Assembly: GCF_964204645.1 (NCBI RefSeq)
Contig: NC_134032.1
Span: 16,356,275 to 16,420,274 of the forward strand
Direction: 5' to 3'
Length of the DNA: 64,000 bases
From: Tubulanus polymorphus
Taxonomy: Eukaryota > Animalia > Nemertea
The notes under the pieces were generated by a model, which was not told where the DNA came from, did no database searches, and saw only the letters and a program-made list of their open reading frames with translations. Each line of letters opens with the position of its first letter. Positions within the stretch are counted from its first letter, which is position 1. Made by a program: the position numbers and the translations under genes. This document shows positions 44,609 through 49,476 of the stretch, one piece after another.

Positions 44609-46504
44609 ATGGATTCCTGGCGCGGATCATTTGTTCTTCTGTTCATATTTCTGCAGGTAATTCTATAATATTAACAACATCATCATCAGTAATAACTCGT
44701 AAAATCCTCGCATCCACGATTATTGCGGAGGCTAACACACATGCTTCTAGTATAACGACGTTTTCAAATAGACTAAACCAGAATTTCGTCAGATGTTTGA
44801 TAGTAAAAAAATTAGAACGCTTTTAAATATTTGGGAATTGGTGTGGACAGTGAGATAGAACGACTTGTTCATCTGCCGATATTTAATTACCAGATTCACA
44901 TCTCAAAGCATTTTGTCGATAAGACAAAATGTTGTCAACACATGCGACGTACGGTTATAGACTCATTTCTCGAGAAAGTGATAGCAGGTATTGTAATTGA
45001 ATCGTAGAGTTTGGTCACCGGTGACTACACTGACTGGTCACCGGTCACTACATTGACCTGACAAACTTACAAGCATTGCCTCTTAACTCTGGTCTATGGT
45101 CTAGTGGTTAGCGTGTTCGGCTGGCATGCTGGTGGTCACAGGTTCGAGTCTTGCTAGGGTTAATGTTAGGTAAGAGCTAGGGTTAGGGTTACTGCCGACC
45201 TAGGGTTAGGGTTAGGGGAGCAGGAAGGATAATTTGGGCAATCTATCATTTGGGCTAATTTTTACTTTTTTCGGGCACACTATAGGGGAGTCATTATGGA
45301 GCTGAAATAAAAACATTAAGGATCCATCGTCAGGTGGTAGGTAATTCCACACTCTGGGTGAAAATGGCTCAATTGGGCGATCGCCAAAAGACTAACATAA
45401 TTGACACCCTGAATGAGAGAAGCTACCAGTGGTGGCGCTCAGTAAGAATTTAAAGAGACCTTTGTTCATTTTATGTGTTCGCAGTTATCGCTGATACAGA
45501 TGAGTTTAGCAACGGAAGAAAACGAGCCTGCTTGTTTCACCAATTCAGTGTGTGCTGAATGTGTGGTTGCGAAGAGCTGTGAGTCATGTAACATGTGCTG
45601 CTCACAGGATGAATGCGACGCTAGTTGTGGTCAGAATCAATGTGAAATGACTAAACGACAGCTCGATGCATGGATGAATGAAATGGTCGGTGATTTCGGT
45701 TTCAGTGATGCTTTCAGTGACGGGGCTGCTGTTGCTTCGTCTTCTGATTCGGATAGTGCATCGGCGACTGTAAGTTCTATATAGACATTTAGAAATAACA
45801 CGTCCCAATTGAAGCGGCCTCAGTTTCCCAGTTGGAAAAGGCGTGATGCTGTTGCGATCGCTTGCAATGATGAGTGGGTTCGAGTCCTGAAGGCTACGGC
45901 GTCCGGGTAAAAATTCAGAGGCTTCGGTCCCGTCGTGAGCAGTCCAATAGCGTAAACTATATAAAACAATGCAAACAAAGACCATAATTAACCCACAGTT
46001 ACCGCGAGTAAGAAACAAAATATCAATGATGACCTTTTCCTGAGAAGTCTACAACAATCTCACCTGATGTGTCGTTGGAACATCGTTGAATCGATTGCCC
46101 ATAGTTTTTGCCGATGTTGCGTGTTTCGACGAAGACAACAATTAAAACCGTTTTAAGCTTCTGAACTTTTTTCATAAAACTGTATCCACAACACTGTGGA
46201 TGCTACCACTTCCGGGACAAGTTTAAACCAGTTTCAAACAGCTCTTATTGTAATCACTCTTAAGGATATCATTTATCACATTTCTCCACTTTATCATAAT
46301 GATCTTTATTCGTTTCTTTTATCATTTATTTTTGAACAGGCTATAGCTCTTTCGACGTTGAAATTCATTTTGGTAGATGATAGCGCCCTAGCGGCAGCTC
46401 TGGACACTGCGGAGACTGTAGAGTGCGTTAATCGCATCGCAAGTAAAAGTAATATGCCCGATTTCAGCGCATCGCAATTCAAACTGGCGTTTTCGTTGAT
46501 TTAA
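44609..46504 (+). CDS. Secreted Cys-rich prepropeptide 1, 165 aa. Exons 44609-44656, 45485-45769, 46340-46504
   Basis: Three phase-0 exons with canonical GT/AG give MDSWRGSFVLLFIFLQ|LSLIQMSLA-TEENEPACFTNSVCAECVVAKSCESCNMCCSQDECDASCGQNQCEMT-KR-QLDAW...SAT|AIALSTLKFILVDD...FKLAFSLI*. AATAAA follows just after the stop. Confidence 0.8.
45006..45220 (+). mobile_element. tRNA-derived element with TTAGGG tail, copy E (inside the first coding intron of prepropeptide 1)
   Basis: Same leader and head; three TAGGGTTA(GGGTTA) blocks. Confidence 0.72.
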
Positions 46505-46656
46505 CAATAATAAAGCCTCATAAACGCGACAAAGATTAATAACTGATCACTTGCGTCCCTACTAATGTCTATTCAAAAAATTATTCAATGTCAATATCAA
46601 TATAATTTATTGTTCGGTGATATAAATATAGCCGCGATCACACGGCGAAGATTTTG

Positions 46657-46802
46657 CCCGGGTCAGATTGGCACGGATCAGACCCGAGCCCGGGTCAGAT
46701 TGGCACGGATCAGACCCGAGCCCGGGTCAGATTGGCACGGATCAGACCCGAACCCAGGTCAGATTGGCACGGATCAGATTGGCACGGATCAGACCCGAGC
46801 CC
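46657..46802. repeat. Short tandem repeat, 32 bp unit CCCGGGTCAGATTGGCACGGATCAGACCCGAG
   Basis: About 4.5 copies; explains the overlapping repetitive ORFs. Confidence 0.9.
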
Positions 46803-47430
46803 AGCTTGGCCCGTGCCTAATGAAAGCGCGCGACGCGAAGCACTCACTCGATATGATCTGGCCAAACAAAGCGAAGTTCGACACTTCCGGAACCAGTTGC
46901 AATTCAACGAAATCATTTGTCTCGGGCTTGGTCCGATATTTTTTTGTCGTGCCAACCATGCACAGGCCCTAAATTACATGGCCCCCCTGTGGGAACAGTT
47001 GATCTGGGCCAACGCCCATGTGATCGCGACTTAAGAGGATCATTTATTCAACAATATATACATCAACCACGGCTTTCTCACTACGAACAATCTCATCTTG
47101 AGATCGCTCGTGTAGGTTCTAACAAATCAGCTTGTTTTGATATTCTCATATATTCTATAAAGCATCATAGTGCGGAACTACCTTCCCTACATCTAATTGC
47201 GTAGTGTGAATAGAGTAATGACCCCATAAACTAGATATCATTAATGAGCACAGATTCAAATTACAAAATATATGCAATTTCTAAACATTATGGTAATAAG
47301 ATTGCATATTGTATAGTGTGCATAAAACTGTCCTCTGAATATATCTGGTTCAAATAAAGCGCTTTTATCTAGTATTATAACCACAATATCATTGTTAAAA
47401 TTCTCTTTTCTCTCTCTCTCTCTCCCTCTC

Positions 47431-48030
47431 ACTGTAGAACTGTATCCCGAGTTGACAGTTAACTCTAACTCACAACTGTGGAACTGGATCCCGAGTTGAC
47501 AGTTAACTCTAACTCACAACTGTGGAACTGGATCCTGAGTTCACAGTTAACTCTAACTCATGACTGTGGAACTGGATCCTGAGTTCACAGTTAACTCTAA
47601 ACTCACAACTGTGTAACTGGATCCTGAGTTCACAGTTAACTCTAAACTCACAACTGTGGAACTGGATCCTGAGTTCACAGTTAACTCTAAACTCACAACT
47701 GTGGAACTGGATCCTGAGTTCACAGTTAACTCTAAACTCACAACTGTGGAACTGGATTCAGAGTTCACAGTTAACTCTAAATTCACAACTGTGGAACTGG
47801 ATCCTGAGTTAACAGTTAACTCTAAACTCACAACTGTGGAACTGGATCCTGAGTTCACAGTTAACTCTAAACTCACAACTGTGGAACTGGATCCTGAGTT
47901 CACAGTTAACTCTAAACTCACAACTGTGGAACTGGATCCTGAGTTCACAGTTAACTCTAAACTCACAACTGTGTAACTGGATGCTGAGTTCACAGTTAAC
48001 TCTAAACTCGTCGTGACTATGGAACTGAGG
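47431..48030. repeat. Minisatellite, 45 bp unit ACTCACAACTGTGGAACTGGATCCTGAGTTCACAGTTAACTCTAA
   Basis: About 13 copies; the first 26 bp match the right TIR of the MITE at 61273-61386. Confidence 0.95.
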
Positions 48031-48448
48031 TTTAATGAACTTCAAAGTTCTTTCCCTCGCTCCCTCCCGTTGTGTCAAAGTTTGTAATAATAATGATGTA
48101 TATTTCTGTGTGTATTGAACACGATGTCGATAACACATGTTATAGAAACACTTAACAATAAACAATAACAAGTTTTATTTGAAAACACTTTCTACTGATT
48201 GAGTGCATCATTTGAAATAGCACTTATTCGATACAGGAGGCTCACAGTCTGTATCGGTACAAGTGAATTTCACAACAAATTTCTATTGTTCCCCGCATTT
48301 CTTGTTGGTTTTATTTCTGACACGTGACACGCGCCAGTAACACGTGTTAATCGCACAAACTCTATCTCCCCTCACAATCAGCGAGCTACCCCCTCACCAA
48401 ACGGATATATAGGTGTTTTTAGATATTTCGTTATTCTCCGGTTCAAAA

Positions 48449-49476
48449 ATGACAAGGTAAGAATTTCTCCGCGTGACCACGTGCACCGGAAACGAATTTA
48501 TATTTTTTCTCGCAATAAATTCATGTTCGCTATTTCCAGGTTGTATTTTCTAATCATTCTACTGTATTTCGCCGTTGACCTTGACCTGTCTCAGGTAATT
48601 TAGATTTTGCCTTTTGAACATCACAAGACTAACAATTCTATTCAAGTCCTTATGAACCCCCGAGGGCCATCTATATACTTTTTTCAATCAGCCTGTCTGA
48701 CTCAGACCCCCTGGGTTAAAGGTAATACCTGTCTATAAAACCGGGCCCGGGGTTTAACGACTCTATTCATTAACTGGGTTAGCCCCGGGTTAAAGTTAAC
48801 ACTAGTCTATGTAAAACTGGCCACAAGCGTTTAGAGGGGGTTGAGGTTGATCCAGGTTGTTTGTAGATCGTCACCGTTTGTTGCAGGCCAATACTTTCGA
48901 GTCTCTGCTGCGCATGCTCTCCGCTGATGCACCGCCGACATGTTTACCATGTGACCAGAGCTGTTTACAACTCAATACGGATGACGTAATGTGCAATCGA
49001 GTTTGTATCGGGTCGGACAAGTCATGTGAACATCAACAACCAATCATCATCAATCGGCGGTCACTTCCGGTAAGCAATATTTATTAGATCACTGGCCCCG
49101 TGGTACACGGTAGCGACCCCTTACGGTGAACCCTTTAACCAAAAGATTGATCAGATCTGGCTGCTGTGAGTTTTCTCCATGATGGTGATCAGGAGTAGTG
49201 ACAATTTGCCATACTACGCGTTATGGATACCTAATAGTTTAATCGAATAGTGCGTTCTGTATGAAATCTAAAAGTGTTTACAACTCCTCGACCTCAAAAC
49301 GGATTAAATCAAAGTGTTGAAAATCGGTCGGTGATTATAAAATGATATTTATTTTGCAGGTTGTCGCCGTTGATAGTTTAAGTTTTATCCTGATTGACTT
49401 AAAAATGTCGACGATTCAATCGAGCAGGAAACGCAAAATGTTACATCGTCTTTTCGAAGTGAAGAATACACGTTAA
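48449..49476 (+). CDS. Secreted Cys-rich prepropeptide 2, about 120 aa, paralog of prepropeptide 1. Exons 48449-48456, 48540-48594, 48887-49069, 49360-49476
   Basis: Spliced product MTR|LYFLIILLYFAVDLDLSQ|ANTFESLLRMLSADAPPTCLPCDQSCLQLNTDDVMCNRVCIGSDKSCEHQQPIIIN-RR-SLP|VVAVDSLSFILID...KNTR*. Splice sites are canonical; a TATA-like GATATATAG lies about 40 bp upstream. Confidence 0.72.

Follow-up and report, generated by a model that had tools for sequence, protein, structure and literature searches.

Small, disulfide-rich proteins with fast-evolving sequences are known from several animal and protist systems. Conotoxin-type superfamilies combine a conserved signal and pro-region with a hypervariable cysteine-rich (Cys-rich) mature peptide, and the water-borne protein pheromones, among them Aplysia attractin and the Euplotes Er pheromones, are small, acidic, disulfide-rich and fast-evolving. 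Within the nemerteans, neurotoxin B-IV is a helical hairpin held by four disulfides (PDB 1VIB; PMC6410017), and the proneuropeptides and prohormones of the phylum have been catalogued (Thiel et al. 2021; PMC8557429). Here we analyze a 64,000-nucleotide stretch of the genome of the palaeonemertean Tubulanus polymorphus (hereafter the window; contig C8, positions 16356275-16420274), in which two neighboring predicted genes, A and B, may encode proteins comparable to these. Our preferred explanation, which we hold at about even confidence, is that A and B are real genes that have escaped annotation, that they belong to a small family known so far only in T. polymorphus, and that they encode pre-pro-proteins. 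The family appears to comprise three clearly related B-type genes (gene B and two copies on contig C6, termed C6a and C6b) together with the diverged gene A.

Each of the known systems resembles these genes in part. The likeness to conotoxin-type superfamilies is that of small precursors (for which secretion is presumed here) in multigene families, in which rapid divergence of the Cys segment goes together with conservation of a non-Cys segment and of a basic site. In contrast to conotoxins, the conserved module lies C-terminal to the Cys part in an exon of its own, even the Cys framework varies between genes, the sequences show no similarity to conotoxins, and the present family is known from predicted genes. 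B-IV and the beta-nemertides come from the same phylum and are likewise small Cys-rich peptides, and the core of gene A is predicted to be helical; B-IV, however, has 55 residues and 8 Cys, whereas the family described here is acidic, with 6-10 Cys in other spacings and no conserved CxxxC. As in lophotrochozoan proneuropeptides, the predicted precursors are short, with a signal-like N-terminus and a basic-pair site, and genes for G protein-coupled receptors (GPCRs) lie nearby, but no amidation signal, repeated peptide copies or cross-phylum conservation was found. Attractin and the Er pheromones are matched in small size, acidity, Cys content and fast evolution, and in the predicted helicity of gene A, but no sequence or fold match to them was obtained.

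The predicted proteins of the family are 120-165 amino acids long and consist of four parts: an N-terminal signal-like segment, an acidic Cys-rich part, a basic pair and a module encoded by the last exon. The Cys-rich part contains 6-10 Cys and evolves fast, with a framework that changes from gene to gene. The basic pair lies in the context [KR]-R-[SQ]-L, reading NRRSL in every B-type copy and KR in gene A, and the conserved module, which opens with xLxFIL[IV]D, stands at the beginning of a last exon of its own. Gene A lies on the same strand as gene B and 1.9 kb upstream of it. The predicted features of the two genes are listed below (a slash marks a splice junction).

44562..44567, plus strand: TATA-like element of gene A, 47 nucleotides (nt) upstream of the start codon
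44609..44656, plus strand: gene A exon 1, encoding, from the start codon on, 16 residues of the hydrophobic signal-like N-terminus
45485..45769, plus strand: gene A exon 2, with the end of the signal-like segment, the acidic 10-Cys region, CE-MT-KR-QL and an acidic Ser/Asp-rich spacer
46340..46504, plus strand: gene A last exon, with the family motif (..STLKFILVD) straight after a strong phase-0 acceptor
46509..46514, plus strand: AATAAA polyadenylation signal of gene A, 5 nt past the stop codon
48406..48411, plus strand: TATATA element of gene B, 43 nt upstream of the start codon
48449..48456, plus strand: gene B coding mini-exon ATGACAAG/GTAAG, 8 nt, kept in both C6 paralogs
48540..48594, plus strand: gene B signal-peptide exon, with the hydrophobic core and ..AVDLDLSQ
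48887..49069, plus strand: gene B Cys-rich exon, with 6 Cys, CxxCDQ, CEH and the terminal invariant NRRSL
49360..49476, plus strand: gene B last exon, with the tail ..L.FILID..STI....L..L.EV

In both genes the frame is open, every junction is GT/AG and the internal introns are phase 0, giving predicted products of 165 amino acids for gene A (stop codon 46502-46504) and 120 amino acids for gene B (stop codon 49474-49476). Putative signal-like, hydrophobic N-termini can be read directly in both models. The exons, junctions, intron phases and last-exon starts all lie where a first-pass annotation of this stretch had placed them, and the dibasic site that it reported past the Cys core is likewise present, as KR in gene A and RR in gene B after the last Cys-Glu. 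The same annotation began gene B at an in-frame alternative ATG at 48523, which yields a model of three exons; we replace this start by one at 48449, in the 8-nt mini-exon, which is probably the true one. It had also proposed a phase-0 intron after a Gln within the signal peptide as a character shared by A and B. Such an intron is present (the exon 1 donor of gene A is CAG/GTAATT, phase 0), but it carries little weight as evidence, and we rejected it as a shared character: CAG/GT is the consensus donor context, and the paralogs carry AAG at that site. Codon usage in gene A looks coding. The log-likelihoods of 0.229 per codon in exon 2 and 0.275 in the last exon are in both cases the best of the six frames and exceed the 95th percentile of null open segments (0.17), and the major facilitator superfamily (MFS) and GPCR open reading frames (ORFs) of the window that served for training score 0.09-0.21. 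The TATA-like element and the AATAAA signal listed above likewise favor gene A being a gene. The segment between the KR and the tail of gene A is an acidic, low-complexity spacer of 37 residues.

Gene B has close paralogs. When the 268-Mb assembly (77 contigs) was searched, both large exons of gene B matched the two contig C6 loci, C6a and C6b, with order, orientation and exon structure all as in gene B (genome-wide E values of 3e-3, 4e-4 and 1e-2). Exon profiles built from the three copies recover exactly gene B, C6a and C6b from the genome at E values of 1e-20 to 1e-34, with the next matches at E > 0.9. The existence of a family, as postulated in the first-pass annotation, is supported. DNA similarity between gene B and the C6 copies is confined chiefly to the exons and to an upstream element, ATGA[CT]AAG/GTAAG, which corresponds to the mini first exon. 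The conservation of this element probably marks the true start codon, so that the B-type genes would have four coding exons. Identity to gene B is 32-40% in the Cys-rich exon of the two paralogs and 46% in the last exon of each.

Inspection of the three B-type genes reveals that conservation is uneven along the protein. The Cys exon is invariant in CxxCDQ, in the Cys that precedes CE by six residues and in the closing NRRSL, and 14 residues of the tail are also invariant (..L.FILID...STI....L..L.EV). The Cys exons of the three copies contain 6, 7 and 6 Cys, of which only four are invariant while the rest shift position. The third Cys of CxxCxxxC is found in gene B only, and CxxxC motifs number two in gene B, one in C6a and none in C6b. 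That is to say, the Cys framework, proposed at first as the defining trait of the family, is not conserved even among three close paralogs. Ratios of nonsynonymous to synonymous divergence (dN/dS) are 0.45-0.72 at dS 0.6-1.1 across the three pairs, and the nonsynonymous proportion of differences is below the synonymous one (pN < pS) in all of them. The claim of a fast-evolving Cys part applies to two of the three pairs, those involving gene B, where dN/dS is 0.62-0.70 in the Cys exon versus 0.24-0.49 in the tail; it fails for C6a-C6b, where the ratio reaches 0.72 for the genes as a whole and 0.88 for the tail. A 278-nt block that is 77% identical between C6a and C6b (L009 3719-3981 versus L010, minus strand, about 8320-8591) lies 200-500 nt upstream of the start codons and may belong to a promoter, to a 5' exon or to a repetitive element.

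Gene A is connected to this family through its last exon. Smith-Waterman comparison of the last exons of gene A and the B-type genes gives shuffle p values of 0.0005-0.003, and hhalign aligns them with P = 1.1e-4, pairing columns 2-15 with columns 2-15 and thus in the same register. In a further, positional test, we took each AG of the window and of unrelated loci with 14 or more open codons behind it and scored the translation that starts there against the motifs of the three B-type genes. The acceptor of gene A at 46340 scores 35.0 and that of gene B 39.3, whereas the best of 4186 other sites scores 16.0. A position-blind, six-frame scan of the window with a hidden Markov model (HMM) ranks the gene A last exon third at 7.5 bits, below the gene B exon and a chance segment at 10.2 bits. 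Since this plain scan is weaker, the weight of the link between A and B falls on the occurrence of the motif at the same intron position and phase. Gene B is much nearer to the C6 copies than to gene A, and gene A appears to be a far more diverged tandem neighbor of the B-type family; the simple tandem duplication of A and B put forward in the first-pass annotation is thus no more than a candidate origin. Judged from these alignments, the family should be defined by its tail exon and not by a cysteine pattern. The proposal that the tail motif could serve as a search handle is borne out by its recovery of the C6 paralogs and by its position-locked presence in gene A; a profile of all four tails found no intermediate family members in the genome.

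The gene structure, the paralogy, the confinement of conservation to the exons and the position-locked motif are demonstrated by the sequences; from this layout we infer secretion, cleavage, disulfide formation and any bioactivity as follows. The protein would enter the endoplasmic reticulum by means of its N-terminal signal peptide, and its Cys-rich segment would form disulfides. A subtilisin-like proprotein convertase would probably then cut after the basic pair, freeing the variable Cys-rich peptide, and the conserved tail, named a pro-domain in the first-pass annotation, may serve in folding or sorting or may have a second function or be a second product.

The observations that weigh against this explanation are best taken together with the alternatives they favor. 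Support for the models of genes A and B comes from genomic sequence, and no protein matching either gene was found in collections that do hold T. polymorphus RefSeq proteins; because those proteins are included, the blanks point to a lack of protein annotation for all four genes. The lack of a matching protein also fits loci that are non-functional as protein-coding genes, whether decaying duplicates or non-coding transcripts with exon-like islands. So do the lack of a canonical poly(A) signal within 500 nt of gene B, the dN/dS values of the C6a-C6b pair, and the condition of C6a (L009 4191-6231; G000:C6:20180190-20182230), in which the homologous splice sites no longer give an open frame because of a 1-nt deletion in the signal-peptide exon. 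With dN/dS just moderately below 1 and this frameshift, the family may be partly decaying. We nevertheless consider non-functional loci very unlikely: gene B and the intact C6b (132 amino acids) retain, at a dS of about 1, all splice sites and open frames over four exons; the conserved islands between gene B and the C6 copies are mainly the exons and the start-codon mini-exon; pN stays below pS in every pair; and C6a regains a frame of 131 amino acids when an AG acceptor 25 nt ahead of the Cys exon is used (exon start L009 4713). C6a itself may be a pseudogene of recent origin, or a shifted splice site may compensate for its deletion. A further concern is that the link between A and B rests on a 13-residue motif and on architecture, because their Cys-rich exons show no significant similarity (BLASTP, E = 0.21; hhalign, E = 0.094). 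In Smith-Waterman comparisons with 2000 shuffles, a comparison that the first-pass annotation itself regarded as decisive for its shared six-Cys core, p is 0.58 for A against B and 0.44 and 0.15 for A against the two paralogs, and the core fails by that measure. The Cys exon of gene A scores -6.6 bits against the three-copy B-type HMM, a value matched by 1327 of 2000 shuffles, and of the B-type profile CxxCDQ ... C-x6-CE[HN] ... NRRSL it shares just CxxC, CE and a basic pair with x-L after it. The six-Cys core also emerges in gene A only on a selective reading, which has to pass over one of the 10 Cys of the exon; alternatively, the arrangement can be equated with the C6a framework (C-x6-C ... 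CxxC ... C-x3-C-x4/6-CE) plus three further Cys, a reading that is not statistically validated. B-type profiles do not recover gene A genome-wide at E <= 10, searches of the assembly with its exons find no paralog of its own, word-index protein searches with both large exons find no relative, and the conserved mini-exon is absent from gene A, which opens with a 48-nt exon. Together with the rank of its tail in the plain window scan, these results would fit a gene A unrelated to the B-type family, its motif being a coincidence or a convergence (for example on a common sorting signal) and its frame perhaps open by chance. That gene A is unrelated in this way is unlikely, given the same-register motif directly after a phase-0 acceptor and its separation from all other sites in the positional test, the hhalign result for the tails, the adjacency of A and B on one strand with the same order of modules, and the coding-like codon usage of both large exons of gene A.

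The main rival accepts secretion and places the Cys part and the tail in one folded, uncut protein of about 100 amino acids, with NRRSL as a structural or binding motif. The invariance of all five NRRSL residues at dS around 1 exceeds what a convertase site needs, so that this sequence may be structural and not a cut site. The tail is moreover the best-conserved part of the protein and opens with a strand-like hydrophobic run, and the AlphaFold2 (AF2) model of the B-type Cys exon, a low-confidence beta-hairpin with a predicted local distance difference test (pLDDT) score of 62.8, is beta-rich and could pair with such a strand. That confidence is too low to decide the matter, however; a basic pair behind a Cys-rich peptide is a textbook convertase site, and the 37-residue acidic spacer of gene A is more easily understood as a linker or pro-region than as part of a compact fold. 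We therefore regard an uncut protein as a possible but somewhat unlikely alternative. The first-pass annotation had taken paired CxxxC motifs to indicate disulfide-stapled helical hairpins, which would make the mature products toxins or water-borne pheromones similar to B-IV or Aplysia attractin. Gene B does carry two CxxxC motifs, nemerteans do produce a toxin of this type in B-IV (PDB 1VIB; PMC6410017), and the AF2 model of gene A exon 2 contains four short helices (pLDDT 59 for the whole exon, rising to 75-82 over residues 21-50 of the Cys core). Both the modeling and the fold searches used single exons, namely the B-type Cys-exon alignment and gene A exon 2 by itself. The CxxxC pairs are not conserved, however, and C6b has none; gene B is modeled as a beta-hairpin, the predicted peptides are acidic, and neither the PDB chains by sequence nor the toxin catalogue yielded a match. 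Fold searches with the two models returned generic or insignificant matches that were no better than those of any helices (best Z 4.0), and 1VIB was not among them. Because the Cys framework is neither significant nor conserved, the proposed helical hairpin is not supported as a feature of the family, and we give little credence to mature products of this kind. Our preferred explanation remains that of pre-pro-proteins from which a variable Cys-rich peptide would be released.

Relatives outside T. polymorphus were absent from every library searched, in line with the first-pass annotation. Pfam and the ESM Atlas gave blanks, and PDB sequences gave no usable match, with no toxin chain at E <= 10. 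A HMMER search with the B-type Cys-exon profile against 1.84 billion representative proteins returned four repeat-driven matches and no significant relative. The best non-trivial match, P0002 (E 6.5e-5; CDQ ... CEHH ... FNRRAL; hhalign P 5.5e-7), derives from a TARA ocean metagenome scaffold (L022, 2730 bp) with a 221-bp satellite array. We rejected it as a repeat-inflated chance match, since it is a gene call on the 221-bp satellite whose best single domain scores 22.8 bits (E = 6.7 for the library) and which has no tail motif. The satellite could conceivably come from a related planktonic animal. The other three matches were rejected as repeat proteins. The family motifs are also missing from the 27 supplementary files of PMC8557429, which contain precursors and include T. 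polymorphus, and, by text search, from the supplements of PMC9415933, which hold toxin-annotated transcripts of 14 nemerteans, T. polymorphus among them.

Receptor genes lie close to the B-type genes. An intronless Srw/rhodopsin-type GPCR ORF accompanies every B-type locus at a distance of no more than 1-2.5 kb. The orientation differs in all three cases, and the positions are as follows.

42511..43551, plus strand: intronless rhodopsin/Srw-type GPCR ORF, 1 kb upstream of gene A
L009 1076-2209, minus strand: GPCR ORF near a C6 paralog
L010 3882-4844, minus strand: GPCR ORF near a C6 paralog

The genome contains at least 125 such genes, perhaps about 900 (PF10324; at least 125 scored, 924 first-look candidates), and for that reason a GPCR at three of three B-type loci is unexpected under uniform placement; GPCRs do cluster in the T. 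polymorphus genome. The three neighboring receptors are only 23-24% identical to one another, and the only database relative of the window GPCR is a T. polymorphus RefSeq protein with 40% identity. Co-duplication of receptors and peptide genes was rejected because of this low mutual identity and because the window GPCR has its closer paralog elsewhere. The peptides might be linked ligands or co-regulated cues of the adjacent orphan, chemoreceptor-type GPCRs within genome-wide peptide-receptor modules, the tail being a new C-terminal pro- or sorting domain; we consider this reading very unlikely.

Several other elements occupy the window. A tRNA-derived short interspersed nuclear element (SINE) copy lies in intron 1 of gene A, outside the coding sequence (45012..45220, plus strand). 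It ends in a TTAGGG-like tail, and a first look at the genome gives 431 candidates; 39 of the 40 matches scored are other copies, 76-83% identical and many of them close to contig ends. The spacer between genes A and B is largely minisatellite, with one array at 47431-48009 (45-bp unit, 12.9 copies, 96% matches) and a second at 46656-46778 (32-bp unit, 3.8 copies). The SINE and the minisatellites were rejected as elements of the family and are unrelated to it. Upstream of the genes, between 29756 and 41378, lie five intronless MFS_1 transporter ORFs of 460-533 amino acids, two on the minus and three on the plus strand, and an uninterrupted ORF of 992 amino acids at 15243-18221 on the minus strand has a weak coiled-coil-type Pfam match (ATG16, below cut-off).

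At present this is a modest gene-annotation result. Orphan secreted Cys-rich families are common in general, and we consider the finding real but modest: the genes are probable secreted Cys-rich precursors without detectable relatives. An unusual trait of the family is that its conserved handle is a C-terminal exon and not the cysteine framework. Cys-spacing patterns can mislead the definition of a family, and the valid statistical link in this case is the tail motif together with its intron position. The repeated adjacency to orphan GPCRs provides concrete candidate peptide-receptor pairs. Very few peptides have been characterized from palaeonemerteans and, if expressed, the genes described here would extend the palaeonemertean repertoire of secreted peptides by a family that is so far unannotated and has no detectable relatives.

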